A stretch of 64,000 nt of DNA from Phallusia mammillata (taxonomy: Eukaryota), in assembly GCA_965637545.1 (NCBI GenBank), contig OZ281499.1:26040001-26104000 (forward strand), given 5' to 3'. Shown here in pieces: positions 15-64,000 of this stretch. Every line of letters starts with the position of its first letter. Position 1 is the first letter of the stretch. Made by a program: the position numbers and the translations under genes. A model generated the notes under the pieces. That model was not told where the DNA came from. It did not search any database and saw only the letters and a program-made list of their open reading frames with translations.

Positions 15-2032
15 AACCTGCACGTCAGCATGTTGCAGTGACTCAGACAATTGTAACACCCGAACAGTGGTACAGATTGAAACCAGAATAAGATGTGGAA
101 CTGGAACTTTAACTGGTGGCGCGTTTCCTACAGCTACCACTTGTGCCGCTAACGAGCTCTGCGCAAGGACAGAAATAACAGGAGGTAAATAAGCCAAACT
201 TTGTTTAGCCAGCCTACATTTCCTTTAGACATTCTTCCGTTTCGCAAAAAAACTCCCATTAGGGACTTTTTACATGCAACTATGCCTAAAACTGACAACC
301 ACACACAACAAATTTTCGTCCTGTTTAACTTGTAACCAAATGAAGTTCTATATTGTAAAATACCAAAACTTATTTTCAGGTGCTACAGAAGGATCGTGCA
401 AGACACAAACTGGATGTAATTTGCTCTGCGCTGGAGTCACGTGAGTGAATTTTTCCACGTATATGAAAATTTCTGCAACTTGTAATAAAAGCTGACATAT
501 AGTTAGTTATTTTAACTTTCACATTTATCTGGCGTGCATCGTTTTGCTTAACAACCTGCCAGAGTGAAAACATTAAATGTTGGATATATTGCAGGGGTTG
601 CACATCTGCGTGTTGCAACGACGGAGATTTCTGCAACAGTCTTTCTGTTACGAACATAATAGATGTGGTCCGATGTGGAATTGCGCCTGTAACGAACGGA
701 GCATTCACTGCAACAATGGTTTGTGCATCTGGTCAAAAATGTCAAAGAACTGAAACAACTTCAGGTATAATCTGTTGCATAAAAATCTTTATCTTCATTC
801 ATTACATAATTAAAACTGGGTTTATTTTTCAGGCCAAACTGTTACACTTGTTGGTTCATGTATTGCTGGAGATGCCACATGTGGATCTGGATGTACTGCT
901 CCGTAAGTTTAAAAGCTCTAATGCTATCCAAATTGTTATCATGTCAACTTTAAATTGTCACAAAAAATTGAATCCAGCGTTCGTGACAACAAACAGTTAC
1001 AACTTGGAAGGAAACGGGTAGACAAAATCGCAAAGTCGACAGAATAAGGATATTTTGATTTGCAAACCGTAACATACTGATAGCCAATTAAAATTCGAAC
1101 TTTCTTAACTCGTTCCCTAGTAGGGAAAAGATCCAAACTTTATTTTAGTTTTTATGACTTAGCACTCAGATAAACACTTTTGTTTATTGGTTGCAGGGCT
1201 TGCGTGTCAGCTTGTTGCAACGACGCAGATGGATGTAACACTCTGTCAGTGGCAACACAAATGGCAAGACAATGTTACACTGGAACAACCACCCAAGTTG
1301 GAAGTGCAGCAGCAAATGGAAGTTTGACTGCTGAGCATTGCTCCGCTGGTGAAATGTGTGGAAGAAAACAAACCACAACTACAAATGGAGGTAGATTGCT
1401 GTCACAGTTACAATGCATCAACATCTAAAACTACAAACAACATCAATATACATAAACGCATTCAACCAACGAAGTCGTACATGTATTCGAAATACGCCAA
1501 GAATTTATGCCTGCAAACTGTACGCTTGTCATACAAAGCGTAAACATTACTTAACAACACACAAAATTACAATAGACATGGTGTTTAAGAAGACAATAAT
1601 ATATTTAATTTGTTTAGGTGAGACTACAGTGACAACAGTTGGATCTTGCAGCACAGCAGCTGAATGCAACGATGGAAACATGCTTTGCAATGGGTGAGTT
1701 GGTTATGCAAGCATTTGACCGTCTATTAATCGCCTAAACAAGATGTAGATGCCTATACTAAAAAAATACTCGATACCATGGCGTGCAACATTACAGCACG
1801 ATTATTAATATTGCAATAAGGTGAAAAAATCTTTTGCAGGGCTGCCGGTTGCATCGAATATTGCTGTGACACTGATGGTTGCAACTCTGCCGCTGTCACT
1901 ACAACAACCACAACCACCACTACTACAACCACTACAACAACTGCAACAACCACATCTGGTGCTAAACATGCAGCACAAATTAATATGTTGGTGATGATGG
2001 GTCTTGTGGTTCTCGGTTGGTTCATGGCCTAA
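15..2032 (+). CDS. Gene 1 (5' end outside window): multi-LU/three-finger-domain GPI-anchored-type protein; last 3 full domains, Thr stalk and GPI-type tail
   Basis: GT-AG exons 15-184, 380-440, 595-764, 833-902, 1197-1390, 1618-1693 and 1840-2032 join in frame. Repeated CxxACCxxxxxCN motifs; C-terminus ...TTTSGAKHAAQINMLVMMGLVVLGWFMA*. Confidence 0.85.
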
Positions 2033-2210
2033 TCGATGTGTTTCCAATGCATCAGCATTATTGTGTTTGTGTGATTTAGAGAATATATATCCAAGTTTAA
2101 ACTATTTTCTTACGTTGCACATGGATTCCAACCTACTGTGAAGTGTGTTAATGTAAGCTGTGTCTCAGTGTTATAATACTATTAAACCGATTCTGTACAT
2201 TCCAAAACTG
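2033..2210 (+). promoter_or_regulatory. Family-wide conserved 3'UTR block (representative copy)
   Basis: ~180-bp block (TCGATGTGTTTCCAATGCATCAGC...CTGTACATTCCAAA), also at ~7714-7885, 18051-18225, 27519-27695, 39223-39400, 47162-47335 and 57764-57935. Partial orphan copies at 9522, 28776, 49721 and 59734. Confidence 0.7.
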
Positions 2211-2529
2211 TTTGCATTTGACATCCCTAAATACAATTTTAAATCTTTGAGCCAAATGCCTGTGGTTTATCTCTTGTGCACTAAAACACCTGACTGTTAG
2301 TTTAAAGCAAACGCCTTGAATCATGGTTCGTCAGGGTTGTTAAAAGCATCATACAAAATGAGAAAAGACCAATTGCGCTTGTAACAAATTTATTTCTCGA
2401 AGAAGCGGGTAGGAGATCCACCTGCTAATACTAAAGTTTCGAGTCGGACGCTACAATGTAAATATACGGAAGGGCTGTCACTTTTTTGTGCAGTTGGGTT
2501 GACTTAAAGCGGGAAGAGAAAGAAAGCCG

Positions 2530-2712
2530 ACATTGCTAATAATTGTAACGCCCGAACAGAACTTTGAATAATGGAGCGTTTCCTGCATTTACCTTTTGTG
2601 TCGCCGGGGAACTTTGTGCACGAAAAGAAACAAGAACTGGAGGAAGTAAGTGTCAAATACAACACTTGATCATAACAACGATCAGCTATACGTAAACAAC
2701 ACAGGAAGCTGG
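2530..2712 (+). pseudogene. Relic long exon of the LU family with its donor and adjacent intron, stranded upstream of gene 2
   Basis: Frameshifted NCNART...NGAFPAFTFCVAG..C.RKETRTGG, then gtaag at 2646. It shares downstream intron sequence with the relic at 8568-8790. Confidence 0.65.
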
Positions 2713-3266: not shown

Positions 3267-6200
3267 ATGCATTATGCTGGAGCAATGACCGTTTTTTGCG
3301 TCCTTCTGTGCGGTGTTGCAAATTGTTTGAATTGTCGCATAGGAACAATGATGCAGAATGGATCAAATCCCACAATTGGATCGTTTGTATCTGCGACTTG
3401 CCCAGTCAACAACCAATGCTCAAGAACTCAAACAACTGCGGGTATTTACAAATATATCGTTGCAATGCTGAGAACATACCATTCAACTTAAATGTATATT
3501 TAGACTTCTGCGCAACTTATGTTTTTAGGTACCGTCGTCACGACCGTGGCATCTTGTTCTACATTCTCTGCATGCGACAATCTTTGCCTTGGTGTAACGT
3601 AAGTTTGTAGCCAACAAAGACTCGTGTAAAATCACCGAAGTAAAACTTTTTACTTGTATTTGCAGAGGTTGTGTTGCTGCTTGCTGCAAGAACGCAGACA
3701 ACTGCAACGGTGATCCGGTGGCGACTATGATTGGACTTGTCGATTGCGTTACTGACTACACGACTACTCCCGTGACCAGCATAACATGTAGAGATGGGGT
3801 TATGTGCGGAAGAAAAGAAGTTACTTCAGGTACAATTGTCAATTTACAAATTAACATAAGACGATGGTTTAATTCCAACATTTGCTAAACCTCAAGGCGG
3901 AACTACGACACCTACGGGCTCTTGCTCAACTGCGACAGAATGTGCTGCTCTGTGTACTGGCCAAACTAGGTAACTACAGCAGTATCTCGTAATAATTTTA
4001 AACCCGCGTACTTAACGAACCTTAAACCCCATTTACGCTCAATGTTTCAGTACAATATCTGTTTGGATAAATCACCAAAAATAGCATACTCGATATCGAT
4101 ATATTATTTTTACGAATTGACATGTTTTTGCGCATAGCTGCGTCTCAGCATGCTGCAACAACGCAGATGATTGTAACAGCCAGACCCAGGTTCAAATGAA
4201 CGTTGTGTCATGTTCCGTTACGAATAGTGGCTCAGCACCTTCAACACCATGTTCCGCAAATGAAGTTTGTGCTAAAAAAGAAGTTACATCTGGAGGTAGG
4301 TGAAGGAAGCAGAACTAAGTATGGAGCACGTTCAAAAAACATAAAATTACGAAACTAAATGTACAAAAACAAAACTAAATGAGTCAATTTTTACACAGGG
4401 TCGACTACAACCACAGCCTCGTGCCAGGCTCAAACTGCATGCGCTGGACTATGTACTGGTGAAACGTAAGTCAACATGAACCTTTACAACCGACTTGGAG
4501 GCTTAATACAATATTTCGCTTTTTTGAAGCGGCACATGCGTATCAGCTTGTTGCTCAAACGCTGACGATTGCAATTCGGGAACCGTTGCTCAGATTACGG
4601 CAGCAAACGCGCTGAGAGTTTGTATGGTGGGAACTTTTACAAAAGATGGATCCAACCGTGCTTCCGGAGTGCTGACGTTTACAACTTGCACGGCTAACCA
4701 GATTTGCGGAAGGACCGAAATGACAGGTGAGCAAGTGTCAACCTGATGGTGTATTACAATTTTTTGACTGCACTTTTATAATGAAAGAAACATTTTATTA
4801 AGTTTGCCTAATCTTTTAAATATGTTTTGTGCCGACTAAAAAGTGCCATTACAGTTGTGAATCTCTTAAATGTGCACTTTAAAAAAGTCATATTTTCAAC
4901 CCCCGCATTAGCAAAAAATAAATAAACGTTATAATGCAAAATATTTCAAAAAAAAGTCAATTGGTGATGTTTTTTAGAGGGTAGAGTTGTGACAACAGTT
5001 GGATCATGTCAAGATTCTGTCGCCACTTGTGACGCTCTTTGTGCAGGCACCGCGTAAGTTATAAAATTTGCAATGCTGACGCGTTTCCATCCGACTCAAA
5101 CATAAAAATTTCAACAACAATTCGAAACTTTTCATTAAGGTAAACTTTGTCAATACCTTTTTTAAAGGCAAAAACATTTTCCGAAGTTTAGTTGCCAAGC
5201 CAAAAACACATATGCGACTGATCAAAGATTTCATGATCAGTGAATTGAACTTTTAAAGTTTGTCAGTTTAATTTAGGGATTTTAACATCTATTTTATATT
5301 ATTCAGCAACTGTGTGTCAGCCTGTTGCAATAACGAAGATAACTGCAACAGAGAGTCTGTGGCTAACATCAAAGCAACAATTGCGTGTGGAACTGGAACA
5401 ATGGCTAATGGAGCGTTTCCTTCAACCACCACTTGCACCGCCAACCAGCTTTGCGCGAGGACCGAAATTGGCACAGGTAAAACTTTAAAACCGTCCTGAT
5501 AAAAAGTGAATAAAAATTTACAAATAAGTTGTTATGTTGCAAATTTTTATCGATTACAATAAAAAAAAATGCCAGTGTTGGTAACATACCCATTACATAT
5601 TCAAACGAACAAATAAACCGCTTTACATTAGTAGCTTTAGAAACTGTAATGACAAATTTGTCTGCAGCTGTAAAGGGATCGTGCCAGACACAAAATTCAT
5701 GCAATCTACTCTGTACTGGAATCGCGTAAGTTAACTTTTTTACATTTACTGACATAAAAGTGTTGCATGGAAAGCATTAAACAAAACAACACGAAAATTG
5801 ATTTAGTGGCGGTCATTGTTGCTTCACATAAAAGAGAAAGGCCACATCTGTCATAGTAGGTGACACGCACTTCGACACTGGCAAAAACTTGTGAGAATCA
5901 AATGAATTATTTAGCAAGTAACAAACAGCGCAGTATTCACGTCTTATCGGCAGGTACACTAATCAGTTGACACAAACACAAACTTATTAATAGGACTAAG
6001 TTTTCACTTATTAAGTTAAGTGATTTGTCTGCTATCTAAGCTATAATGAAGGTTAAATATAAGCTTTCAAGATCATTATTACCCATCACAGGGGTTGTAC
6101 ATCAGCATGTTGTAATGATGCCGATAACTGCAACACTCGGACTGTGGCACAAATAAAAATGGTTGTTCGATGTGGAACTGGGTCTGCAACAGATGGAAAC

Positions 6201-7713
6201 CTCCCTAACACAATGACTTGTGCATCTGGTCAACAATGCCAAAGAACTGAAACTACTGCAGGTATCAAGCATTTCATTGAATAGGCGGTTTTCATTCATT
6301 ACATAATTAACATTTGGACTATTGTTTCAGGTAACACTGTTACAACTGTTGGAACGTGCATTGCAGGAGATGCCACGTGTGGAACAGGATGTGCTGCAGC
6401 GTAAGTCAAAAATCCTATGCTCAAACTATTGTGGTCGTCATTTTAAATACAAATGGTTTACACACAAAAAAAACAGTGTGCTTATAAATTTTTCTTGTTT
6501 TATTGCAGGGATTGCGTGTCAGCTTGTTGCAACGACGCAGATGGATGTAACACTCTGTCAGTGGCAACACAAACAGCAAGACAATGCTACACTGGAACAA
6601 CCACCCAAGTTGGAAGTGCAGCAGCAACTGGAAGTTTGACTCTTGAGCATTGCATGGCTGGTGAAATGTGTGGAAGAAAACAAACCACAACTACAAATGC
6701 AGGTAGATGGCTGCTACAGTTACAATGTACCTACATCTAAAACTAAACCAACCGCAACATATTTTATAAACACAAACACACATTTAACACCCAATGTTGA
6801 ACTTCAATGATGTTCAAGAGGTTTAAAGTTAATGTAAAAGCATATAGAGCCAATAAATGATAAGCTGCAGACAGTGCACACTGTTTCGACCTATAAGGTC
6901 TCATCAGTGCAGCTGGTGACGAGAGATCGGCCGCATTGGCTAGTGTAGCCATTCAACGGCACTCCAGTTTGTTGGGAGCACAGGGTACAACCCCATGGCC
7001 ATTGTGAGCCAGTTTCATCTGTGCTGTATGTCCAGTTGTGGCATCGCACAGACTAGGTGATGCATGGGGTTGTACCCTGTGCTCCCAACAAACTGGAGTG
7101 CCGTTGAATGGCTACACTAGCCAATGCGGCCGATCTCTCGTCACCAGCTGCACTGATGAGACCTTATAGGTCGAAACAGTGTGCACTGTCTGCAGTTTAA
7201 AGTTAATCATGTATTTCCTCCTGCAAACCGTACGCAAACACTAATAAGACAAGCTAAGCATAATCATCTCATAACAACGTAATGAATCGCAACAAACATC
7301 AGGTGTATATCATTTGTATATCATGACAACAACACAACATTACATGTGTTTAGGTCAGACCACAGTGGTAACAGTGGGATCTTGCACCACAGCAGCTCAA
7401 TGCAACAATGGAAACATGCTTTGCAATGGGTGAGTTTGTTATGCACGCAAATGACCGCTTATTAATCGCTAATACTAAAACAAACGCTCGATACGATAGC
7501 GTACAACACAATTAGTGTTATTAAAAGATGACAAATTTTTTCTGATGCAGGGTTGCAGGTTGCATCGAACATTGCTGTGACAGTGACGGTTGCAACTCTG
7601 CCACTGTCACCACCACAACAACTCTTGCAACTACATCCGGTGCAGAGCATGCAACCAAAATTAATATGTTGATGATGATGGGTCTTGTGGTTCTCGGTTG
7701 GTTTATGGCTTAA
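3267..7713 (+). CDS. Gene 2: signal peptide, 7 LU-like domains, short Thr stalk, GPI-type tail (626 aa, 15 exons)
   Basis: Exons 3267-3441, 3529-3598, 3666-3829, 3897-3969, 4138-4295, 4399-4465, 4530-4726, 4978-5053, 5307-5476, 5668-5725, 6092-6261, 6331-6400, 6509-6702, 7354-7429, 7551-7713. Total 1881 nt, in frame. Begins MHYAGAMTVFCVLLCGVANC. Confidence 0.88.
6834..7195. mobile_element. Hammerhead-bearing inverted-repeat insertion (Penelope-like pLTR or retrozyme fragment) in intron 13 of gene 2
   Basis: Perfect 133-bp arms at 6865-6997 and 7063-7195 with a 65-bp spacer. A 13-bp direct repeat GTTTAAAGTTAAT flanks it (6821-6833, 7195-7207). It is absent from the homologous intron of gene 1. 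The Penelope link is inferred from the known association of hammerheads with PLE pLTRs. Confidence 0.7.
6863..6914 (-). ncRNA. Type I hammerhead ribozyme (antisense copy in the left arm)
   Basis: Exact reverse complement of 7148-7195. On this strand stem I extends to 7 Watson-Crick pairs (AGCTGCA/TGCAGCT). Confidence 0.85.
7146..7197 (+). ncRNA. Type I hammerhead ribozyme (sense to gene 2 pre-mRNA)
   Basis: Stem I CTGCA (7148-52) pairs with TGCAG (7191-95); core CTGATGA 7153-59; stem II GACC-ttata-GGTC; GAAA 7173-76; stem III CAGT-gtgc-ACTG; GTC triplet 7188-90 with predicted cleavage after C7190. Confidence 0.88.
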
Positions 7714-8567
7714 TCGATGTGTTTCCAATGCATCAGCATTACTGTGTTTGTGTGATTTAGAGAATATATATCCAAGTTTAAACTATTCTTTTACGTTGCA
7801 CATGGATTTAAACGTACTATGAAGTGTTTAATGTAAGCTGTCTTAATGTTATAATACATTTGAACTGATTCTGTACATTCCAAAAGTGCTTACAATTTAA
7901 CTCGCTAAATAAAATTGTGTGACTTTACCTGAGCTTTGCGAGATGGACAACGTTAGCTCATGTTCACTAAATCGCCTAAACGTTATCTTAAAAGATAAAA
8001 CCTTAAAATAAGTTAAATTAAAGTTCGTCAGGGCTGTTACAAGTGTAATACAAGAACCAAGTCGGTTTCGCAAGCAATAAAAGCATAAGAAACTAAAAGC
8101 CGACTATTATGAGAAAAAAACAAATCAATATAGCCTACACCTGGACAATATACACCAGGAGAAGAAAGTATTTTTCTGAACACGTATATGTATGTTATCT
8201 AGCATTCGATCAGTTTGTGTCAACAAAGTCAAATACCATAAACTTTTATGCCCCTCTTTTTCCTCGTGTATAACATATGAGGCAAGTACGAAGCTAAGTT
8301 TAATGTATGTTAAGTATTTGAACTACTTTTAATCGAAGCCGTTTAACCAAACCCAACATAAACATGCAAGTTAGACAACAATACCAAGTTTCAATATCTT
8401 AAGCATGATAATAGCTCTAAGAACAACGTACAATGACAAGAAATAATAATAAGATCGGCGAAACTGATTAAAGCAGAAAAAGAGAAGCGACGTTAGCACA
8501 ATAAAAAAACCAAAAGTTTATGCGACTAAAATTACAAAAACTTTTTAGTTCCATAAATTTTGCACAG

Positions 8568-9108
8568 GTGCTTGTTGCAACATTGCTGATACCGTAACGC
8601 CCGAAGTAGCAAAGGTGGGAGTCAGAATTATATGAGGAACATTGAGTAATGGAGAGTTTCCTGCAGTTACGTTTTGTGCCGCCGGGGAACTTTGTGCACA
8701 AAAAAACAACAACTGGATGAAGTAAGTGTCAAATACAACACTTGATCATAACAACGATCAGCTATACGTAACCAACACAGGAAGCTTGTAAAAACTATTT
8801 TAGTAATACTGTCAAATATCCTGAAGCTGAAAACATGCTTGATACAAAGCAAACATCCGTTACATTACATAATTTTCTTAACCTTGCAAAACTCATTTTG
8901 TACAATACTGTCTGTAAAGGTCAGAAGTATACGCTATACAGTTGTATTCAAGTCAAAAGAAACGTCACTACTACGACACCGCCATTTTGTTTAAAACGTT
9001 GGTGTCGTATTTCATTTTTCAAAACAGAGATTTTCCTTTTACAGGCACCACCACTGTCGGATCGTGTCACAATCATGAAGCATGCAAAGGACTGTGCGAC
9101 AGTGCAAC
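8568..9108 (+). pseudogene. Isolated degenerate long exon plus intact-looking short exon (one LU module) of a decayed family member
   Basis: 8568-8721 reads ACCNIAD..(frameshift)..VRII*GTLSNGEFPAVTFCAAGELCA. 9045-9108 is ag/TTTVGSCHNHEACKGLCDSAT/gtaag. An orphan 3'UTR fragment follows at 9522-9584. No signal-peptide or GPI exon. Confidence 0.75.
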
Positions 9109-11535: not shown

Positions 11536-14500
11536 ATGGGCCAAGTACGTACAGTTGCACTGTTCACGGTTTTCTTTGTATGTCGCATTTCGTTCAGTGA
11601 TGCTCAGCCTGCGACCTGTATGGTTGGTACGGTTGGTGATGGTATAGCTGCAGCTACCTGTACTACGTTTTGTGGGAGGACGGAAATAGCGGGCGGTGGT
11701 AAGTAGAAGCTTGTAAAGAGCATTTCTCGCTTGTATAAGCAATTTAATGGGTGTGCTATGCACCAAATGTAATTATATGATATAAGACCGCCTTCCACAG
11801 AAAAATAACACCGGACGCATAGAGCAGCTCCAAATCGTTTGGTAGCTTTACACTAAATGTTTTGGCAGGAAAACACTTCATTTAACATCCAAAGACTCCC
11901 ACACAACCTTTATTTATTATGCCCCCTTTGCCCAATGACCGCACGTTTTGCAACCTATGATTTATAACGCAACTTGTTTAAAAAGTGGAGAGTAAAACAA
12001 ATCCGTCCTAAAGGATGTTTAAAACGGTCAAAGGGAAACAGCTCATGAAACACAGAGCCAAAACAGTTCACATCGGACGTGTCCTCTTTTAACGACTACT
12101 GTTTTTTTTTTCAGCCCAAGTTGGATCCTGTGAGGCCGATGTCGCCGCTTGTGACGCTCTGTGTGCTGGAACAGCGTAAGTTGATGTAAAAAAGAACTTT
12201 AAAAAAATTGTTCTCACCGACATTATAAAATACGTCAAGTAAACGCGCACAGAGTACGCTAGCTTGTTTCACAACCGCGCCGTCGCACTAAAACAACATA
12301 TCTGACAAAAAGCAGTTATAGCAAGTGAAATTTGCATTTAAGTTAAATCAAACAAACCAAAATAAAAGTTTTTTAGAAATTTCTGTAACGTTTAGAAACT
12401 GTGTATCGGCCTGCTGCAATGATGCTGACGATTGCAACACCGGGGTCACTGCAATGAGAGGAACAGTGACATGTGGGGTTGGTACACATGATGGTAGCGC
12501 GTTCCCTTCCCCTGCAATGGTGTGTGACCCAGGCGATCTGTGTGGAAGGATTGAAACGTCAGGCACACGTAAGGAAAAGATTCACATGTTTTAACAACGG
12601 TACAGCTCTTTTGGGTGTTCTTTCCGCCTATACCCATCTTGCAGACCTACATTAGGTCTGGCGCCCTGTAATTTGCAATAAAATTGTTTTTTATTAATTT
12701 GGCATTACCGGTATACGCCGCATATACCGACAAACCCTGTCGAGTTGACACACTGTGTACAATACTTAGTAAGAAATTTTAATCCAAAAAAAGAATCTAG
12801 TAGTAACGAAAAGGGGAGTTGTGCACTTAAATGAGTCAGAATAACACAGGTCACATTAATTCGACATTTTCTTTTTACAGCCCCAACTATTGTCGGATCT
12901 TGTTCAACTGTTGCAGAATGTGAAACTCTATGCGATGCAGTGACGTAAGTTTTACTGTACAAAAGTTTGAGAAAGCCAATAAACATTCAAACCAGTATTT
13001 TGGTTTTTGTATGGTTCACATAAAGATAAATTTAGAGATCTAACAACCAAATTACTAAAAACCAAACTCGCCAAAGAAAACTAATATTATTATCAAAACT
13101 AAACAGAAACTTGTGCCACGACATCATGTAAATATCACCAGACATTTTCTTTAGGCATTCTATCAGAAACTGTGTGACGACGTTTGGCAAAAAAAGCTGC
13201 CTACCTTTCAAAAAAATCATCATTTCACCTAAAACCTTAGTGAACAACTGCCAATTACTGAACATATTGATATATAACAAACAATATACAAAGTAATATG
13301 GTCACAGGGATCCATGTGTATCGGCATGTTGCAATGATGCTGATGACTGCAATACTCGAACAGTGGAAGAAATGAGCAACATTGTGCGATGTGGATCTGG
13401 GGAGTTGGCAAGTGGAGTATTTCCTACAATGCTGACTTGTGCTGCAGGATCACTTTGTGGACGAACAGAAATTACCGGTGGTAAGAAACGATTTGCATGA
13501 ACTAAAATGGCAACAAGAAATAGTTGCGCTTTTCATAAAATGTTTTTGCAGGTGCTACCACCGGAACTTGTTCAACGCAAGCCCAGTGCGAAGCGCTTTG
13601 TGACAATACCGCGTAAGTTTTATGAAGCAGAATGCTTCATAATGTTTTTTTGCAAAGCGGACATTATGCGAAAAGTTGTAGGATGACGTTAGTTGAACAT
13701 CCGTTCCTTTCCCAGAAACTGTGTATCGGCATGTTGCGATGATGCTGACGACTGTAACACACGAACAGTGGCAGAAATGAGCAACATTGTGCGATGTGGA
13801 ACTGAAGCGGACGCTACTACAACACTGTTGACTTGCGCGGCTGGATCGCTTTGTGGAAGAATGGAAGTAACTGCTCCAAGTAAGAAAATATTTAATTTTC
13901 CTTACATTTTTTTTTAATTGTACCAGTAGTTAATAACCATAAATGCTTTTTTAACAACTGACATTAAGAACGCTAGTGCAGAAAATGTGTTTCTAATGTA
14001 AAAATATCAAAGGGTGAAATAAACTGGCACTGATAAAATGTTTTCATGAAGTTTTTGTTTTTTGAAGTATTTGAGGGTGCATATACTTTCTGTAAAGCTT
14101 TATCAAGCATTCGTCCTAATTTGTTTTAGTTTGAATAATTTTACCTACCTTAACCGATGTTTAAGTCAAACTTTTATGTTTTTGGTTAAAGGTGCAGCAA
14201 CTACAGGATCTTGTTCGACCCAAGCAGAATGCGACGACTTATGTAAAAATACTGCGTAAGTACAAAAAAACAATTTGGTATCTTGAGCTGATTCCGGCTT
14301 TCTACGGCTAAATCAAACGACAGAAAACATCACTACAAAATAATGTTCCAGTAATAACAGAAAGCATTAATGCAATGTACTGTTCTAGTCAATACAAAAT
14401 GTTTTCTGATTTAATAATGCGCTGCTTATGAGCAATACTTGAATGCAGTGACGCCAAACCCACTTTGTTTAAAAAAGCAAAATATCGGTAAACCCAACAG

Positions 14501-17500
14501 CTACATAATTTACGCGATCTGTTCATACAACTTCGGAACTACGAAAATTTAAAAACGCTAGGAAACCATACTTTGTAGAAAGGTGTTTCTGACGTCGCGA
14601 CAAAACGAAATTTTCACGAAATAAACTCATTGAGAATCGAAAATGATTTGACGAGAAACAGCCAGTTAAATACGTAACTTAAACATTACAATAAGTATTT
14701 CTGATTTCACAACTTCACAACCGCGTTGCATCTTCATTTTTGTTGAAGGTTTCTAGTGAAAATTCTCACGGATTATTTTCTGTAATTTGACTTTTTCCAG
14801 GTCTTGCACTTCAGCATGTTGCAGTGACGCGGATATGTGTAACACAAGAGCAGTGGCAGAAATTGGCGCAACTATTAAATGTGGAACTGGAACTTGGGCT
14901 AACAATGCATTTCCTACTGCCACCACTTGTGCCGCTGGCGAACTTTGCGCAAGAATGGAAGTCAGTGGAGGTAAAAGTTCGTTTTTGTAGTTGTTTTGCA
15001 AAAACAAATTAGCCGATTTGGTTAGCACACTTCCTATAGTTATACAAGATTTTGGTTAGTTATGTTGACTGAGCTTTGTCCGACTTAATTCGAATACAAA
15101 ATATGTGTAGGTGGTGACACAGTGGGTTCCTGCCAGACACAAGCTGCATGTGATTTGCTATGTTCTGGAGTAACGTAAGTGTTTGTCAAAACTGTGTTCT
15201 GTTTCAGCTATTTTTCAGTGCAGCTAATGTATGTATGCTCCGATACAACACGTTGTACAACACGAAGTCTCATAACTTATTTCACTCGTGTTACAGAAAC
15301 TGCATGTCTGCGTGTTGCAACGATGCAGATTTCTGCAACACAGAAGCAGTCACAGATATCGTCGCAGTCGTCCGGTGCGGGTTTGGGACAGCCGACAGTA
15401 ACGGAGCCTTCACTACAATCATGACATGTGACACAGATGAACACTGTCGCAGGACTGAAACAACCTCAACGAATACGATTGCGGGATCCTGCATTGCTGA
15501 CGCTTCCATGTGCGCTAGTGGTTGCACCGCAACGTACGTTGCTTCATGAATAAATCTGATACTCATGTACACTTGTCATTAAACTTTTTTCTATCAAGCC
15601 AAAACCCTTTTCCCGGGTGTTATAACACAAGCATAATACCCTCGATTAAAAAAACTGTTAAAAAAACGATTCAATTTGGCACAAGTTTAAATAAACTCAA
15701 ACGAATCCAAAGTCAAACCAGATACTTCGGTTCATTTTGTGCCGGCAAACCATTAAATTTGTTTTCGTCACAGAGATTGTGTTGCTGCGTGTTGCAATGA
15801 CGCAGACTTGTGCAACACTTTGACCATTGCTGTGACGACAGGCAGAGTTTGCATGGTTGGAACAACTACCACAGTTGGAACTAATGATCCAACTGGAAGT
15901 ATAGTGCCCACACATTGCAGTCCAAACACCTTCTGCGGGAGAACTGAAACCACCACAACAGCAAGTAACAACTTTTGGAAATATTTATGGCTGCATACCC
16001 AGACACATACTTAATGTGAAGTAATATTACAGATAATGTGGATACTGTGGTGAGGGTTGGATCATGCCAGGCTGATGCCACTGCTTGTGATCTACTCTGC
16101 ACTGGTGTCACGTAAGTTGGACGTTAAAAATAGATAAACAGATGACAAAACACTTAAAAAGCAAAAACCTCGTTTTTTTATAAATTGTTTTACATTGCTG
16201 TAGCATTCTGTATTTTTTGGCTATTGCTTAGATGTAAACGTCAATGTAAAATAATATATATTTCATTGTACTCCAGGGGTTGTGTGGCAGCATGTTGCAA
16301 TGATGCCGACAACTGTAACAGCGAAACAGTCACTGTTATCAAGAACGTAGTGACCTGTGGAGTGGGAGTTTTTGCTAGTGGAGCGTTTCCAACCCCAGCT
16401 ATGACATGCCAAGCTACAGAACGATGTGGGAGAACAGAATTAACAAGTGGAGGTAAAATTTGACATGTATTATTAAAACATTTTAGGTTAACTACACATC
16501 GCACTTTCACATTTACAATCAACCTTACATACATTTTTGCTTCAAAATTTGGTAAGTATTTTTGTATTATCTTCAAGGATTCTTTTGTTTTGGGATTAAT
16601 CTATGCCGCCAAATTGGAAAATTTAGGTTAAAGTAAAATAAAACCGCGGTTCACTGATCTAATCATTAACAAATCAACACAAATATTATATTACCCAACT
16701 TAATAGTGATACACTTCTGTTTTTGGTGCCCATTTAGTTATTTTCACTACCGCTTTTGAACTGATTTCGGACAGCCATTTAATGGTATTCTGGCCTACTT
16801 TTCAAATGCCCATGTGTAAAGTAATACCTAATTCTAACATTGTAATTTGTTTTTTCATAAAGAGAACGTAAAGTTTATACATATATCTACGATTAAAAAA
16901 AGTTTAAAAAGTCTGACGTAAATCTTGTTCATTACAGCTGTTGAAGGATTTTGTTCAACGACAACTCAATGCACAGCTGGACTTTGTGGAGAAACCTCGT
17001 AAGTTTCACTTTTCTCTCAATGATTTATACCTAGCATAATGCGCAACACACGTCAATATGCAAATCAAATAAAAACTAAATTTAATCCAAAACTTAGTAT
17101 TGTCGCAACTGAGGTAAATGTTAACCAATGACCCATAATGTGTGTTGCAGAGGTTGTGTGGCAGCTTGTTGCAACGTGGCAGATGGATGTAATAGTCTAT
17201 CAGTGGCAACACAAATGACAAGACAGTGTTTGGTTGGAAGAACTATGCAAGTTGGAAGTGCTGCAGCAACTGGAAGTCTGACTGCTATGCATTGCCCGGC
17301 TGGCGAAATGTGTGGAAGAACACAAACCACAACTACAACTGGAGGTAGGTAGCTGTAACAGTTGCATTGCATCAACAGTTAAAACTACAATCGGGTTTAT
17401 TTTCGCGTGGAACAGGCGTGTACGCAAATCAGGAAACCTAAGCAAAACATTTTAATCTAAAGTGAAGCAGGTTATAAGAAGTACAACTCGGAAAAGTTTT

Positions 17501-50100: not shown

Positions 50101-50174
50101 TACCGTGGAAGTAAACAAGAGTGCAATATCAGCAACGAAAAAATACGGGAAAAACGCCGATCCTCACCGCACAC

Positions 50175-51957: not shown

Positions 51958-54900
51958 ATGTATTTCGCTGGAGCAGTGGCCGTGTTTGTCGCCCTTCTGT
52001 GCGGCGTCGCAAATGGTTTGGATTGTTCGGTGGGAACAATGATGAAAGATGGGGGAGATCCCGCAACTGGAACGTTTACACTTGCAACTTGCCCTACCGA
52101 CTATCAATGCTCAAGAACCGAAACAACTGCAGGTAACTATATGTACATATATCGTTTAATTGTTAAAAGCACGTGATTCATTCTAAATATAGTTTATTAC
52201 TTTTATCTTTTGCAAAACTCAAATTTCTTTCAGGTACCGTCGTCACGACCGTGACATCATGTTCTACAGCTTCTGCATGCGACAACCTTTGCCTTGGTGC
52301 AGCGTAAGTTTGTGAAAATTATAAACAGAAAAAATAAATAAAAATGAATGTAAATTTCAATCGCGTTATTGTTCTATATTTGTTATAATATATACGCTAT
52401 GTTTGCAGGGATTGTGTTGAAGCTTGCTGCAATGATGCGGACAACTGCAACAATGCTGCGGTGGCTGACATCATGGGAACTGTCAACTGCATTACTGACT
52501 ACACGACTTCCCCTGTAACCAGCACAACATGTCAAGCTACCGAAATGTGTGGAAGAATAGAAGTTACGGGTAATACTAGATGTAAAAGTAAAATTGTCTT
52601 TAACATTAACCACTTGTAATGTTTTTAGTTAGCACAACTACAACACCTACAGGCAGTTGCGCAACTGCAGCAGATTGTACCAATGAGGCACTGTGTGGTA
52701 GTACATCCGGGTAAGAAAGCAATATACTTCGTGATCATTAAAACTTAGGCTGGATAATAAATCTTATGTATATTCAACCAGTTTGCGTAAAGAAACTGAT
52801 GTATTAGGAGAACCACATTATTGAAAGAAATCTTAATATTTACTTTTTCATTTATCCAAAATAGTGTGCTAGTAATCATAGCCGATTTATTTTGACATTT
52901 TTTGCACAGTACGTGTATAGAAGCTTGCTGTAACAACGCAGATGATTGCAACAATCAAGCAGTAGCAAATGTAGGCTTCCTTTCCTGTATCGGAGCCAGT
53001 GGATCTGAGGTTTGCAGCACTGCTGGACATGTTTGTGCCAAACAAGAAGTTACTCCAGCTGGAGGTGGGTGTCTGTATAGTTACTGCACTTTAGACCAAT
53101 CAAAAACGTGCAAAGTTCATTCCATTCATGCCATATTAAAAGTAATTTATTATATTACCTACGAGATGAAAATGCTCTTGTTTAATTTTAAAGGAAGCAC
53201 AACAACGACCGCATCGTGTCAAGCACAAACCGCTTGTTCAACACTCTGCGATGGTGAAGACGCGTAAGTTCGCACTGGATCAAACCCACTTACATAAACT
53301 AAATTAATTAATCAATCAGACAGTTGCATTTAGATCGCAAATCACTTTTTTTACGTTTAATTTAATTCTTTAAAACAATCCTAGAAACACTTGGTTTAAA
53401 AGTTAAAAGTCGACAAATTTTTTTTGATTTGTATCTGTAAAGACTGCCACCAATAGTTCCCAATAAATGCACAACGGGAACCCCGTGTATTTAAATTACA
53501 ATTATTAGACTCCAGTAACGTATAGTTGTTTTGTTTATGTAGCGGCACATGCGTGTCCGCTTGTTGCTCAAACGCTGACGATTGCAACTCGGGAACCGTC
53601 GCTGAGATCAACTCGCTAAGAGTTTGTATGGTGGGAACTTTCACTCAGGACGGAAATGCGGATGCGTCTGGACCGCTGACTGTTACAACTTGCACGGCTA
53701 ACCAGATTTGTGGAAGAACCGAAACAACAGGTTAGAAAAATCTTTAAAAGCGCAACATAAAAAAGCCGAACTAACTAAAAATGTCATCTTGTATGAAAAT
53801 AATTATCTTGCGAATTTTGAAATGACTAAATGTTTATGCTAACGCCTTTGTTTAGTTGCTTCCACCGGACAAAATAAATAGGCCATTTAAAAGAGAAATT
53901 TATACCAATGTAGCATTTTTTCTCTAGTATTTAAAAAAAACTATCTAATAAAGCAGAATCTTTTGCAGTGGGTACAGTGGTAACGACGGTTGGATCTTGT
54001 CAAGATTCTGTCACAACATGTGACCTACTTTGCATCGGGACATCGTAAGTTACTTGACATACAGTGTGGCTATTTAATTGTCAGCAGTTATGGTAACCAG
54101 CAGCACTTTCGACTCTTGTGAAACATTTTTTTCCACGGCAGAACCAAAGAGCACACTAAAATGCCACAAACGGGGTTTTTGACTAAACACAAAAAATAGC
54201 TTCAATTTGAATTACGTAACCAATCCATTGTTAGCATTAACAGCCAGTGGTTAATATGTAGTAAATCGCTTCAGTTCAAGTGAATACAACAGTTGTTTGG
54301 GAATTTTTAGGAACTGTGTGTCAGCTTGTTGCAACAATGAAGATAACTGCAACAGACAGTCAGTCGCTGATATGGGAACAGCTATTACTTGTGGGACTGG
54401 GACATTGACTAATGGAGCATTTCCAACAACAGATATGGCCTGTACAACTTTCTGTGGAAGACAGGAAACTGATAGTGGCGGTAAGAATATTTGGTTGTCA
54501 TAATACCAAAATGACTTGTGCATACACTCGGGTCTGTAGTAGAGAAAACGCCAACAACTTTAACCTGTTCCCTGACTACAATCAATCGCACATTTTAAAG
54601 TAAATTAGAATGAAGAGAATTGTAGCCTACATTTTGAACAAAAATATGCAAACGCGATTTGTTGTACAGAAAGCAGTGTCACCAATTTACTTTGTCTAAA
54701 ATTAAAATGTATGGTGGAGATAGTAAACGTGTAAAACTCGCGCTAATTACACAAATACATGTGTATATATAACATTTAAAAGCGACACTTTTTTACAGTT
54801 GTAGGATCTTGTTCAACACAAACGCAGTGTGACGCTCTTTGCACTGGTCAAATGTAAGTAAAAAATTATACCTTGTTGTGCTACTGTGAAGAAATAGAAA

Positions 54901-57763
54901 GTAAACCGACAACGGGGGGTGACTTAACTCAGATTGTCAATGCCTGCTTCGAGTTATATAACCTGAGATTCTAGGCGTATGTTTTCCGGAAACTTTGTTA
55001 ATCGTCCTTGTAGTAAACAGTAATAATCAGTGATAAAAGCGGTGGTACTAAATATCGCATGTGACCGCACGTTATCACATCAAAGGAAGTTGTAAAGGGC
55101 TTGAAAAAACTTTTGCAAAGGTATAATTTTGCGGACTTTTGAAAGCTTTGACGGTTAGCGCTATTCGGGTTAAGTAAGGGTTTGCAATTAAAATAATGCT
55201 AGAATCTGGACTAATTTACCCTTTTGGGGGCTTCCATTCTCACATTATCGACATCATTCAGTATTCTCAGTGGAATACTATGCGGTGCAATGTGGTAATA
55301 TGCGGCATTTAGCTCTACTCCTTCTAAAAGACTTGCCGCAACCAAACAATCATTTCCCGTGGTGTTTTAGGTTCCAAAATCTCCAGCTTAACAAATGACG
55401 TTTATAGCCCGTAGTGTACGTGAAATTTCGACTACATTTTTTGCGCCACAGATTTAAACTGTTGCACAAGACACGAACAGAAGCAAATCAAAATACGTTA
55501 CATTCTGTCCAAACATTTCAACAACAAAGTGTTAATATTCGACCTTCCAATTGTATTTTTGCAGGAATTGTGCCTCTGCTTGCTGTGATAACGCAGACAA
55601 CTGCAACCTCGTATCAGCCGCTGTGCAAAATGGTAGGGTATGTATGGTTGGAACAACTATGACAGTTGGAAGCAACGCTGCAACTGAAAGTTTGGTGGCC
55701 ACTCATTGCAATCCCAATATGTTCTGTGGAAGAACTGAAACCACAACAACAGCAAGTAAAATACATTCTGCGGTTTGATTTATGGAGTACTCGTCGAATT
55801 TTTTAACAAAACCGCAATTTTGCAGACAACGAGGACACAGTGGTTGTTGTTGGATCATGTCAAGCATCAGCAGACTCATGCGACTTGCTCTGTGCAGATG
55901 ACTCGTAAGTTTACAAGCTCACACATTCTACAAAATCCAGCACGACCAACATTACACAATTTGCAGAAACTGCGTCCGTGCATGCTGCAACAATGCGGAC
56001 GGTTGCAACAGTGTTTCAGTTGCTATGATGACAAGTACGCTGACTTGTTACGATCAAGCAGTTACAGGAACAGCGACAGCTTTAACCACAACAGCGGACT
56101 GCACCACCGATCAAGTTTGTGCTAGAACAGAAACCGGAACTGGAAGTAAGTCCTGTTGCTGGGGGTTGCTACCGCGTTCTGTATAACTTAGATTTGAATT
56201 ACATTGAAACTTATTGTAAATTGAAATGGTAAAGGTAACTATTTTTTATTCGGCAGTGAGAATCGCGCACTTTAAACAATTGATCTGCATTATTTGTTGT
56301 TGAATAAATCAATTTCAACAACACAACTGACAAACGGCTTCCCGTGCGCACAAAAAATACGCGATTTTACTGCCGAACAAAAATTTACACCAAAGCAAAG
56401 ATTCTTTTAACACAATAATGTTCGAACAGATACAGCAGATGTTGTTACATCTTGTCAAGCTGCAACTACATGTGCAACATTGTGTGGCTCAACTCCGTAA
56501 GTACTCAACTATGTCACAATTTCTATTACTGCCTGAAATTAGTAACAGTCCCTTGAAGCTCCACGCACAATTACACCCCAGAGGCTTAAATCCTACTTTT
56601 TTGCACGCATAGTTTTCAGTTTTAAACTTGTTTTTGGGAACCCAAAGTTGGGAACAAGTGACTCAAATTAATAGTTGTCAGCAAACCGGTTTGTTCTATT
56701 TCATCAGTTTGTGACGACAAAACACAGGTTACAATAGTCAAGGGACAATTTTACAGTATTTGTAAACCACATTTTTCATAGAAATTGTGTGAGTGCTTGC
56801 TGCAGCAGTTCGGATCTCTGCAACATTTTAACAGTGAGCCAACAAATGGCCCGAAACTGTTACGTTGGAAGTTCAACTTCCGACACACCAGTTATGGATA
56901 TGACTTACACTCGGTGCGCTGCATCCGAACAGTGCGGAAGAACCCAGACATCTGCCACATCTGGAAGTAAGTCTTGTGCGACGTTACCTAATGGTCGTCT
57001 CTTATTCGAACTTTCGTACGTAACAACCCTACTTAAAGTACTCATAAAGGGCAATAACAACCTGCAGACAGTGTACAATGTTTCGATCTATATAGTCTCA
57101 TTATTGCAGCTGGTGGCGATAGATTAACCGTATTTGCTAGTGAAGCCATCCAACCACAATAAAGAAAGCCATACCTCTACTATTCTGTTCGCTGCCACAA
57201 CTGGTTTGGGGCCTTCACAAGAGCAATAATGCTTTGGATAAATTATTCGCGCACATTTTCTTTTGCAATTATGTTTTCTAATGTTTTGCTAATATTCAGG
57301 TACAACAACAGTGACTACAGTTGGATCTTGTACAGCAGCAACTGCATGCGACACACTTTGCGGAACGTAAGTTAGTAAAAACATACTTACAAATTTTTGT
57401 AACAGTCTCTAGTACTAAGTAAACCTTTGCCCATCGCTTGTTTGTGAATGGTATTCGTATAAACTTTGTCCCATCAAAAGTGATACGAACAACATTTCTT
57501 TTAACATGCATATTAACATCCTTTCAGAAAAGATTACAAAGTAAAAAACGAACGAACAGCAAAACATGATTATCTTGTTTCACAGGGCGGAAAACTGTGT
57601 ATCAACTTGCTGTGACACTGATGGTTGCAACTCTGCCGCTATTGCCACAACCACTACTACAACCACTGCAGCAACTACAACAACTGGTGGTGCTGAACAT
57701 GCAGCACAAATTAATATGTTGGTGATGATGGGTCTTGTGGTTCTCGGTTGGTTCATGGCTTGA
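51958..57763 (+). CDS. Gene 7: signal peptide, 8 LU-like domains, Thr stalk, GPI-type tail (715 aa, 17 exons)
   Basis: Exons 51958-52132, 52234-52303, 52409-52569, 52629-52710, 52910-53064, 53194-53263, 53543-53730, 53969-54044, 54311-54480, 54799-54853, 55565-55755, 55826-55904, 55967-56145, 56430-56496, 56782-56966, 57300-57366, 57586-57763. Total 2148 nt, in frame. Confidence 0.88.
57040..57204 (-). mobile_element. Decayed copy of the hammerhead-bearing element in intron 15 of gene 7
   Basis: 57062-57154 aligns with 6865-6959 (~75-80% identity by eye). 57184-57204 matches the reverse complement of that element's spacer (19/21). Core CTGATGA is mutated to ATAATGA. Confidence 0.75.
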
Positions 57764-60637: not shown

Positions 60638-61206
60638 TTGAGTTTACGGCGAAGTGGGAAGAGAAAGAAAATCGAGAGTAGTGCGCTTTGGTTTTCGGGC
60701 AAAAAGAGAAAGATTTGGCGCAAATCAGTGCCTAATTGTCCGGGACTGGTTGGAATTGTGATCAAAGGCCCTACACAACTTTGTTTTTTGTGTGCTCGCC
60801 TCAGAGCTATGAAAACGCAATAATAAAAAGGTTTTACACACAATGAACCTCAACTTTAGTTTTCAGACGCGCAAAAACATTGTTACAACATGTTGTCGGA
60901 ATGTGAAAAAACGATATTGTTTGAAAAATCATGATAGTAAACGCCATTTTAGTTATGACATAGTATGAAGGATTGTGGGGTACCGTTTCAAATTTGGGTT
61001 TGCAAGTGGCCGAATCAGTTTGGCAAACCGGATACATATCTAGCTTGTACTTAATTCGTTCAATGAGTTGTTCAAGTAGTCATCGTATATGTGTTAAAAA
61101 TTTAGTGGTAAGATCATAATTTAATGCCAACAATTTATCCGATCGAACATGTTCGTACAGGTATAGTTGGGATTTGTTTCAACCAAAAATATCTCAAATT
61201 TAAACA

Positions 61207-64000
61207 ATGGGCCACGTACGTGCAGCCGCACTGTTGGCTGTTTTTCTTGTGTGTGGCGTTTTTTACACCAATGCAGCGGTTACGATGTGCTTGGTTGGTA
61301 CGGTTGGTAGTGATATCGCAACAGCTGCCTGTACAAACTTCTGCGGAAGAACTGAAATAGTGAGTGGGGGTAAGTAGCAATTTTGTTAAGAATATAATTT
61401 GTTTGTTTGTTTTTGTGATAAGCGACGCACAATGTTTAACAGGGTGTCAAAATTAAAATGGAAAAACAAGGTAGAGAATGCAAAAACACACAGCGTCAGA
61501 ACCGCTTACATTGCACATTGTACTACATTGTAACCGCTTACATTGTATTTGTACCTAGTTATTTACTTTTGTACATTTCAGAGCATGTTGGATCGTGTGA
61601 GGACGATCTCGCCGCTTGTGACGCTCTCTGTGCCGGGTCACTGTGAGTTGATGCAAATAAAATAAACAGCATGTTTTACACACCAAAAAGTTTAACGTGG
61701 ATAAAAAATTTGCACTAGTTTCAATTGACGCCGTTTAAGCATACTTAACGCAACCAAGCACTACAATAAATGTTAGCGATAGAAAACAATACCAAGTTAT
61801 TTTTTTAATATTATTAGTTCATTAATTACTTCAAGAACAACGTTCGTAAATGTGCATGCGACGCAAAACAATTTACCTTTATTTTTAGGAACTGTATATC
61901 TGCTTGCTGCAATGATGCTAATGACTGCAACTCAGCGGTAGACACAATGAGAGGGACAGTAAATTGCGGTGTTGGAACACACGATGGTACAAACTTTCAA
62001 ACAGCTGAAAAGACATGCGACGCAGGCGATCTGTGTGGAAGGAAGGAAGTAACTGACTCTAGCAATAGTAAGTCGAGAAAATGAACTTTTATGCTTTTTG
62101 CACGCGGATAGACATTAAAATGTTACAGTGGTTTTAGACCACAAATATTTTGTACAACACGCTTCTGGAAAACTTCTACCAACATTCCTTATTACAGCTT
62201 TGACCTTTTGCCAGGGAATCTTGACGGTTAACTTGACTAAACACGTATAAATCATATTACAAAAGCATATAGTATTTTTGTACCGGTCATGAATATTTTT
62301 GTGTTTACTAACAACTTCAAAAATACCAAACTATTAAACAGAAAAAAACGCAAGAATTTAGAAATACAAACAAAACTACAAAACTTTTCAGTCGTAACCA
62401 TCACTGGATCTTGTTCAACTGTGGCTGAATGTGAAGCACCCTGCGATGGCGAAACGTAAGTTGTGTTAGTCCGAGACATTTCTGGCCCTTTTCGAACAAA
62501 TGTTACAATTAAAATGTCCCCTGAGTTCCAGCAAAAGTGTAGAATTTAAAATAAATTTGCAGTATTTTTCAGCTCTAATGTAACAGTAAAAAACTCATCT
62601 GTATTTGCCCGTTTAAAATTAATAATTAAAATTCATGCCCTACCATTACACTTTAAGGGTACATTAAACCGTGCACTAAAATTTAGTAACCGTGTAAAAT
62701 TTGGTAACCAAATTGCTTTACAGCTTTAGGTCCAGTGTGTTGGTAAGGAAAACGAGGTTAGATCAAAAAATGTGAAAACCCTGAAACCAAATAGCAATTG
62801 TGCATCGGTAGCAAACACAATAAACTGCAAATCGCCACAAATAATAGGCAAAGTGTTGTTGTTGCAGAGACGCATGTGTGTCGGCATGTTGCAATGGTGC
62901 TGACACTTGCAATACTTGGACAGTGGCACAAATGAGCAACATTGTGCGATGTGGAACTGGAGCGGACGCTACAACGCTATTGACTTGTGCAGCTGGATCG
63001 CTTTGTGGCAGAATGGAAGTAACTGGTTCAAGTAAGTACGATTTGCTTTGCTCAGTTTTAAAGTCGCAGGGTCCTGCTAAATAATAGTAGTCGAAAATAT
63101 ATTACAAAGACTAGTGCCTGTTAGCAAATGACTTGGATTCAAATTCGAAAAAAACAAAACAGTAAAGGGCATTTTACTAATAACATTCTATCCAATATGT
63201 CAACTGAAACACAGACCTTACTGCATGAAGTTTGACTTGTTGTGTCGTATTAAATGGCGATAGGGATGACCGCAATAACTTTCTTAAATACATTTTTGCA
63301 TGAAGTTTAAATGTTCGCTTTTTGAATGAAGCTCCAGCAACAACCGGAACATGTTCAACTCAAGCACAATGCGATGCCCTCTGTGCCGATACTGCGTAAG
63401 TGCAATAAAGCAGTAAACAAGTTGTGCAAGAAGTGCATAACAAACACCAAATAATTTGTCACAATGTTTTTGGGGAATTTAAGACCTTTACTGACAATTT
63501 ATATTGTACATTATTTGTACAAACGGAAACTGCTTTCAGGTTTTTGTTCAAACAAACTAATTTGGGCAGTAAACGGTAATTGAAGAAAAAACTCTTTTTA
63601 CTGATAAAAAAATCGGAAAAAAAACAGGGAAATAAAGTTTATCACAAAAACATTGTGAAACATGGCAAAACGTCTATAAAAATACCTAAAACATAGCAGA
63701 AATCATTATAAAAATACCCAAATAAGGATTCAACTTCAATCTGATTAATTATTAGGCAATTTCAAAAAAACTACCAGAAACAACGTTTAATTTTTTTTCA
63801 AACAACAACATAAATGTGAAATCCTTTCAGTCATCAGTACTACGAAAATGTGTTTGAAGCAAAACTCAAATTTCTTTCTTAAGTAAAGCCATTTCAGCTT
63901 TATACTTTTCACAGAGATTGCACAGCTGCATGTTGCAACAATGCCGATGACTGCAACAGCCGAATGGTAGCACAGATCGAAGCTGCCATTGTTTGTGGAA
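61207..64000 (+). CDS. Gene 8 (3' end outside window): recent duplicate of gene 5, first 3 LU-like domains
   Basis: Exons 61207-61369, 61582-61642, 61889-62067, 62392-62455, 62868-63031, 63332-63395 and 63915-end are in frame. Begins MGHVRAAALLAVFLVCGVFYTNA. Confidence 0.85.

Follow-up and report, generated by a model that had tools for sequence, protein, structure and literature searches.

The 64,000-nucleotide stretch of Phallusia mammillata DNA analysed here (the window; C6:26,040,001-26,104,000 of a 240-Mb assembly) carries part of a tandem array of genes that would encode surface proteins of the glycosylphosphatidylinositol (GPI)-anchored type, built from repeated and divergent Ly6/uPAR (LU) domains. 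The window contains no long open frames. At the DNA level the CC-x5-CN pattern occurs 59 times, compared with 0.59 times expected from dinucleotide shuffles, and 57 CC-x4/5-CN peptide motifs are found on the + strand; the few minus-strand motif matches are palindromic echoes of + strand sites. Gene models were constructed from open stretches and scored canonical GT/AG sites. They define eight co-oriented genes, six of them complete (G1-G6) and two cut by the edges of the window (G0 and G7). The complete genes encode proteins of 635-786 amino acids with 7, 9, 8, 8, 8 and 8 domains, respectively. A preliminary description made from the sequence had proposed eight co-oriented paralogs with a signal peptide, 7-9 ten-cysteine domains, a Thr stalk and a hydrophobic tail, and the spliced models bear this out. 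The pseudogene relics that it mentioned also exist, though they are few, and are found downstream of G0 and G1 (Table).

Table. Genes, exons and segments of the array in the window. Capital letters A to T designate domain types in N- to C-terminal order.
Feature	Position	Strand	Description
G0, 3' part, 5' end cut by the window	15..2032	+	3 domains (A B C), Thr stalk, hydrophobic tail; spliced model
Relic of finger-1/C3 segment, downstream of G0	2561..2662	+	
G1, complete	3267..7713	+	15 exons, 635 aa; 7 LU-like domains (D E F G A B C) between a signal peptide and the stalk with tail
Pseudo-exons downstream of G1	8561..9108	+	Degenerate big exon 8561-8704 (CN lost, in-frame stop) and lone small exon 9029-9108 (GTAAGT donor)
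G2, complete	11536..18050	+	786 aa, 9 domains (H I J J A B K L C)
Domain G2_d5 (modelled)	14874..15345	+	C1-C3 14874-14970, C4-C6 15111-15174, C7-C10 15297-15345
Fused big and small exon, G2	15297..15533	+	One frame from domain 5 (C7-C10) into domain 6 (C1-C6)
Example of a terminal exon	17855..18050	+	C7-C10 of the last domain, poly-Thr stalk, AGA / EHAAQIN / MLVMMGLVVLGWFMA-stop
G3, complete	21240..27518	+	736 aa, 8 domains (M N O K P K Q R)
G4, complete	30240..36435	+	713 aa, 8 domains (H I J A B K L C)
G5, complete	41173..47161	+	712 aa, 8 domains (D S F G T K Q R)
Linker and finger-1 segment in G5 big exon 43144-43340	43205..43295 (approximate, from alignment)	+	Short-tract exchange: G1-like within G6-like exon edges and flanking introns
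G6, complete	51958..57763	+	710 aa, 8 domains (D E F G T K Q R)
G7, 5' part, 3' end cut by the window	61207..64000	+	H I J ...; recent duplicate of G4

The exon pattern is strictly periodic but out of register with the domains, each of which takes three exons. The last four cysteines (C7-C10) of one domain and, after a linker of about 11 residues, the first three (C1-C3) of the next are encoded by a big exon; one base completes its first codon, and it ends in phase 1. A small exon carries C4-C6 and ends in phase 2, nearly always before GTAAGT. Domain borders are devoid of introns. A phase-2 intron separates C6 from C7, and a phase-1 intron lies in loop 2 of every domain except one, where intron loss has fused a big and a small exon of G2. 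Because this exon module is out of register with the domain, swapping or skipping any pair of big and small exons keeps the frame and yields a hybrid domain. The cysteine spacing is atypical in one small exon of G5 (42143-42206).

All 54 domains fit the pattern C-x8-24-C-x2-7-C-x10-22-C-x5-9-C-x2-6-C-x3-8-C-x3-CC-x3-5-CN and could be aligned over 92 columns. The CC-x4-5-C-N motif closes each of them, and the first domains carry all ten cysteines. The N-termini are hydrophobic and signal-like. At the C-terminus a run of 5-25 Thr/Ala residues is followed by AGA or SGA, EHAAQIN and MLVMMGLVVLGWFMA, with the stop codon directly after. The tails are nearly identical from gene to gene (...GAEHAAQINMLVMMGLVVLGWFMA) while the ectodomains vary; only that of G4 is five residues longer (VAVAT), at the point where a repeat-flanked insertion begins. 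Signal peptides and GPI-type signals were both called by rule from the sequence. With small omega residues, a polar spacer, a terminal hydrophobic stretch and no cytoplasmic tail, this C-terminus would constitute a GPI-attachment-type signal, as had been anticipated.

The complete proteins are rich in Thr (17-18%), Ala (12-13%) and Cys (11.5%) and poor in Lys (0.3-1.6%) and aromatic residues (1.5-2.4%), and their net charge ranges from -14 to -54. Loop 2 is Thr-rich. The six proteins G1-G6 contain two N-x-S/T sequons in total, against 65.5 expected and a minimum of 46 in 2000 shuffles. These features suggest a surface that would be O-glycosylated, protease-resistant and free of N-glycans. Silent TGT/TGC differences at the invariant Cys codons of G1-G6 occur no less often than differences at other synonymous sites, although the numbers are small. 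They are commoner in several gene pairs, such as G2/G4, where the proportion of synonymous differences is 0.66 versus about 0.3.

The window covers only part of the array. The array extends over about 355 kb with at least 24 genes and lies near one end of C6, a chromosome-scale contig of 27 Mb. A profile of the big exon searched against the genome gave at least 150 scored exon matches (264 candidates), nearly all of them within C6:25.92-26.26 Mb and on its + strand. The terminal exon is present in about 24 full-length copies at C6:25.94-26.26 Mb. The array and its surroundings were read in alternate 10-kb pieces of C6 (L001-L018), in which family motifs span 25.90-26.25 Mb and end before 26.264 Mb.

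The family is transcribed and spliced as modelled. In three probable RNA runs, which carry the same species label as the DNA runs, contigs fall on exons only and depth is zero across most introns. The match of a 147-nt contig starts exactly at the predicted acceptor 6509 of G1, and the contig continues for 23 more letters upstream. A 1449-nt contig from run X1 matches only one big exon of G1 (4533-4720, 94%), the matching sequence being of the type of G5 exon 43144, as expected from the spliced mRNA of a G5-type paralog. Finally, the 141-residue cDNA-derived Phallusia mammillata protein CAB3266606.1 (P0003), named 'SCO-spondin-like', is colinear with four consecutive exons of an array member in piece L015, with both junction types as predicted. 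Exon by exon, it is 76, 84, 95 and 97% identical to the genome. The two cDNA-derived fragments known for the family, with this exon-wise identity of 76-97%, may be a hint of variation between individuals.

Exhaustive HMMER searches of 1.84 billion proteins with the big-exon profile returned only two single-exon fragments. Both belong to cDNA-derived Phallusia mammillata proteins, which have been mis-named 'SCO-spondin-like' and 'Not1 protein'. A homologous-protein search with P0003 found none, and a contig search for P0001 yielded no encoding record. No description of such a family was found in the literature on ascidian, Ciona or Phallusia Ly6/uPAR/three-finger proteins, and a 2026 survey of invertebrate LU proteins covered no tunicates. 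The family is ascidian-restricted and unannotated.

The plesiotypic LU domain has ten cysteines forming bonds 1-5, 2-3, 4-6, 7-8 and 9-10, and loss of the 2-3 bond is frequent (PMC6600238). Judged by spacing, eight cysteines of the array domains occupy the canonical LU positions 1, 4, 5, 6, 7, 8, 9 and 10. The 2-3 pair of loop 1 is absent, and an extra pair is present in loop 3. Absence of the 2-3 bond together with an additional disulfide in loop 3 is the configuration of ACVR2, BMPR2 and LYPD6 (PMC6600238).

The three-finger assignment made in the preliminary description was examined by structure prediction. The usable AlphaFold2 input consisted of four spliced domains, 24 C1-C3 fragments and one C1-C6 fragment from the fused exon. 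The model of the spliced domain G2_d5 has a predicted local distance difference test score (pLDDT) of 78.6 and a predicted template modelling score of 0.62; when a single sequence was used, the model was poor (pLDDT 46). The predicted structure comprises two β-hairpins (strands 2-7 and 15-18, 24-30 and 34-41), a short helix (43-47) and a last strand (56-61), and its structural matches are nearly all three-finger proteins. Foldseek against the PDB placed such proteins in 49 of the 50 top rows, with a TM-score of up to 0.64 for CD59. The matches included Prod1 (best E value, 0.086), long neurotoxins, CD59, cardiotoxins, Lynx2, LYPD6B, GPIHBP1, PSCA and receptors of the TGF-beta family. VIA-align was run against 48,161 representative chains. 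The top 38 are all three-finger/LU proteins or TGF-beta-receptor ectodomains (Z 6.8-3.4, with 59-69 of 70 residues covered), and unrelated folds rank below them. The matches of G2_d5 include bucandin (Z 6.8), CD59 (Z 6.6), Prod1 and GPIHBP1, as well as uPAR, CD177, TEX101, C4.4A and the ectodomains of ActRIIB, BMPR and TGFBR.

Language-model neighbours point in the same direction. In the ESM Atlas the feature neighbours of P0003 are DUF753, ecTbetaR2, Toxin_TOLIP, UPAR_LY6 and Activin_recp clusters, and its structure neighbours are PSCA-like, PLA2-inhibitor-gamma and cardiotoxin models, all with scores at the level of a lead. An Atlas search with the fused exon gave no usable match. Moreover, the phase-1 intron falls between strands 24-30 and 34-41 of the model, that is at the tip of loop 2, which is the internal intron position of LU genes (Leth et al., PMC6600238). 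Because the predicted fold, the loop-2 intron, the language-model neighbours and the cysteine spacing agree, we file the domain as a divergent LU domain, a classification that is supported at the level of a model.

The number of LU domains per protein is given as one to four, and as one to three in sponges (PMC6600238; PMC13719153), so that 7-9 domains lie beyond the numbers in these reviews, as had been supposed. The vertebrate multi-LU GPI proteins comprise uPAR with three LU domains, CD177 with four, C4.4A, TEX101 and Haldisin with two, and a cluster of two-LU genes on zebrafish chromosome 21 (PMC6600238). A signal peptide, tandem LU domains without any other domain, a GPI-type C-terminus and clustered genes are common to these and to the array. 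However, the array proteins carry a poly-Thr stalk and 7-9 domains as against 2-4, they are encoded by at least 24 paralogs between which segments are exchanged, and at the sequence level they do not match the vertebrate proteins. The N-terminal domain of mammalian proteins of the uPAR/CD177/C4.4A type lacks the 7-8 bond, whereas the first domain of the array proteins keeps all its cysteines. Canonical LU genes devote a two-exon set to each domain, with phase-1 introns flanking it (PMC6600238). This generic set is not kept in the array, where no intron marks the domain border and the exons are out of register.

By spacing, the array domains resemble those of ACVR2, BMPR2 and LYPD6 in the missing loop-1 pair, the additional loop-3 pair and the CCx4-5CN end. 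Nevertheless, their extra pair is a C-x5-C located just before C-x3-CC, and the Pfam family Activin_recp does not match. Unlike ACVR2 and BMPR2, the array proteins have no transmembrane kinase and their domains are repeated instead of single. CD59, Ly6, Lynx, Prod1 and the snake toxins provide the best structural matches and, like the array domain as modelled, have a short loop-3 helix; a GPI anchor is a further common feature for many of them. Unlike the array proteins, they are single-domain proteins encoded by two exons per domain with phase-1 flanks, and identity to them is only 15-25%.

Clustering of the 54 domains gave about 20 types, and the genes are mosaics of domain series. G5 and G6 follow the series D S/E F G T K Q R, and G2 and G4 the series H I J (J) A B K L C; G1 begins with D E F G and continues with A B C, and G3 reads M N O K P K Q R. 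G7 is a recent duplicate of G4. Their exons differ at 19 of 736 positions and their non-exon sequence (introns and upstream region) at 13 of 2156 (Fisher p = 4.5e-5). The codon changes, nine synonymous and eight nonsynonymous, are partly clustered, with for instance six within 34 bp. Likewise, several big exons of G5 and G6 are 86-88% identical while most of the adjacent introns are 93-98% identical, the exception being the intron downstream of exon 43920-44089 (66%).

A tract of this kind lies in G5 exon 43144-43340, which is 92.8% identical to its G1 counterpart and 82.7% identical to that of G6, although the flanking introns of G5 and G6 are 93.5-97.6% identical. In a three-way alignment the edges of the exon and both introns are common to G5 and G6, and the interior, which encodes the linker and finger 1, is G1-like in G5 but not in G6. 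The G1 introns around the counterpart exon are unrelated to those of G5 and G6. Finger-coding segments thus pass between paralogs by short-tract exchange, which also explains why divergence, even at synonymous sites, is higher in exons than in introns. Together with the mosaic domain order, these tracts support the earlier suggestion of a recombining cluster. Two processes diversify the array: unequal exchange of exon modules generates mosaic genes from about 20 domain types, and short-tract conversion moves linker and finger-1 segments among paralogs, the terminal exon being held uniform.

The most variable columns of the alignment are those of finger 1 and of the C2-C3 stretch. In K-type fingers the arms are conserved and a four-residue tip is hypervariable (TNDP, SNAA, NGNP, NNAA, TDPA, SNPA). 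The terminal exon is kept alike: its synonymous divergence is 0.14, compared with 0.4-0.6 in the rest of the gene, in line with the variable ectodomains and near-invariant tails noted at the outset. The ratio of nonsynonymous to synonymous divergence (dN/dS) was computed region by region for six gene pairs. Values are about 0.1 for the Cys box and 0.03-0.26 for the tail; only finger 1 of G0/G1 exceeds 1 (1.43, from few sites). Pervasive positive selection is thus unsupported. These ratios are, however, hard to read because exchange inflates dS.

We consider it probable that the locus is an ascidian array of multi-LU, GPI-type proteins, diversified by exon exchange and acting as a multivalent surface binding or recognition coat. 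Apart from the poly-Thr stalk and the C-terminal GPI-type signal, each encoded secreted protein contains nothing but its 7-9 divergent Ly6/uPAR-type domains. The proteins would form acidic, O-glycosylated, N-glycan-free rods, very roughly 20 nm long, on the outer leaflet of the membrane. The many different finger loops that they present may engage in multivalent extracellular binding, with microbes, other cells or soluble proteins as possible ligands. Several points weigh against this interpretation. The binding or recognition function is no more than a hypothesis; the composition of the proteins fits a passive coat equally well; and dN/dS in the loops is 0.3-0.5 in five of six gene pairs. The fold rests on a single predicted model, the underlying alignment is shallow in the C-terminal half, and the last seven residues are poorly modelled. 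Foldseek E-values are weak (about 0.09 or more), VIA-align Z-scores stay below 8, and disulfide pairing and GPI attachment are readings of the sequence only. Hidden Markov model (HMM) searches recovered no LU family: three spliced domains and six exon translations gave no Pfam match at E up to 10, the UPAR_LY6/Toxin_TOLIP clan included, nor did P0003 at E up to 0.01. A PDB sequence search (phmmer, 4-row profile) found nothing significant.

These negative searches, together with the poor single-sequence model and a C4-x6-C5-x3-C6 spacing that is helix-like, could mean that the domain is not LU at all, but another disulfide-rich fold that AlphaFold forced into a three-finger shape through the CCxxxxCN pattern. 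The sole PDB sequence match was the N-terminal part of a fungal protein (6ryv), presumably PAN/apple-like, at a non-significant E of 3.5; we dismissed it as a chance match. We judge a non-LU fold to be quite improbable, since two independent predictors (AlphaFold2, and the ESM features with the Atlas's own model) arrive at the same clan, eight of ten cysteines have canonical LU spacing and the intron position is that of the loop-2 tip. CD59, moreover, also has a short loop-3 helix.

With an LU fold retained, the main rival concerns function. The proteins may instead cover blood cells or a barrier epithelium (gut, or epidermis under the tunic) with a dense, mucin-like layer, acidic and resistant to proteases, serving for shielding or anti-adhesion and not for specific recognition, their diversity being a by-product of concerted evolution in a tandem array. 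The Thr- and Cys-rich, Lys- and aromatic-poor, acidic composition would suit such a protective coat, as would the poly-Thr stalk and Thr-rich loop 2, the loop dN/dS below 1 in five of six pairs and the many near-redundant copies. There is also a precedent in mammalian LYPD8, a glycosylated GPI-anchored LU protein of the gut epithelium that keeps bacteria off. However, a purely protective role does not account for variation that peaks at the finger-1 tips, for the exchange of finger segments beside a conserved scaffold and tail, or for the almost total avoidance of N-glycan sequons. We regard it as possible but, on balance, unlikely. Alternatively, the array could be a germline repertoire of variable receptors for self/non-self or microbial recognition, in which short-tract conversion shuffles finger-1 cassettes among about 24 genes and selection keeps them different, introns and tails being homogenised. 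This is more doubtful; if true, it would provide an LU-based counterpart of other variable-receptor families of invertebrates and agnathans.

Two further roles are minor contenders. The LU proteins Bouncer and SPACA4 act in fertilisation (PMC6600238). A fast-diversifying tandem family with segment exchange, in which cDNA fragments depart from the genomic copy by as much as 24% in one exon, might similarly supply the surface of eggs or sperm with proteins whose variable fingers would decide self/non-self or species specificity during fertilisation. That ascidians are self-sterile hermaphrodites also speaks for such gamete or allorecognition, but at least 24 paralogs with a conserved domain order are not the pattern known from ascidian self-sterility loci, and overall dN/dS is not above 1, which makes this role improbable in our view. 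The proteins could also be self-protection decoys of the CD59 or PLI-gamma kind: at the cell surface, their LU domains would bind toxins or pore-forming components of complement and so neutralise them. CD59 is indeed among the best structural matches, and PLA2-inhibitor-gamma-type two-LU proteins are among the Atlas structure neighbours. Nevertheless, similarity of fold is uninformative on function and no CD59 or PLI sequence signature was detected, and we give this explanation very little credence.

LU domains are known mainly as single modules, with at most four in a row according to the reviews, whereas 7-9 occur here in each protein of at least 24 tandem genes. With the exon layout of the array every intronic crossover gives an intact hybrid domain, and exon-limited exchange leaves exons older than their introns, a natural case for germline diversification of a binding scaffold. 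Annotation pipelines miss the family, and databases hold only the two mis-named fragments. As an unannotated ascidian surface family, it joins the candidates for immunity, barrier function and gamete interaction in the invertebrates closest to vertebrates.

Other elements were observed in the window. An intron of G1 contains a very high-copy repeat (6848-7300), where depth in the DNA runs reaches about 1.3 million compared with a few hundred to a few thousand in bins elsewhere; it is the most abundant part in the RNA-type runs too. At the gathering score, Rfam found nothing in the whole window. Two inverted Hammerhead type I matches, at 6864-6913 (-) and 7147-7196 (+), score 22.8 and 21.4 bits, below the gathering score of 34, and flank a long hairpin at about 6958-7103. 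By sequence this looks like a hammerhead-bearing repeat. After the G4 tail, two copies of the same sequence of about 0.6 kb (36372-36971 and 38653-39207) are consistent with an insertion of the long-terminal-repeat type at the G4 stop codon, replacing the 3' untranslated region; Pfam detected no domain in the frames of 36372-39207. A conserved open stretch of about 150 codons (…TRGKTPILTAHDESTRGSDLWKISNGAVREKKFWGNQTPLKESG…) precedes the start codons of G3, G5, G6 and G7 by 0.4-1.9 kb (18866-19324, 40047-40502, 50115-50489 and 60410-60820). It has no Pfam match and may either be an old mobile element or belong, as promoter or 5' exon, to the duplicated unit.

Outside the window, a Ty3/gypsy-type retroelement with long open frames for reverse transcriptase, RNase H and integrase lies within the array, in a stretch without family exons (L012, C6:26184001-26194000). 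Matches to the part of the terminal exon that encodes the Thr stalk and hydrophobic tail were also obtained elsewhere on C6, at 24322514-24322642 (-), 24446894-24450034 (+) and 25145237-25145365 (+), making four places, two of them near each other at about 24.45 Mb. The big-exon profile has a lone outlier at C6:9611817-9611978 (-), with E = 8e-15. These outliers may be related GPI-type genes or a dispersed member of the family. Downstream of the array, ordinary genes follow (F-box/ApaG, KDM2-like and INTS6).

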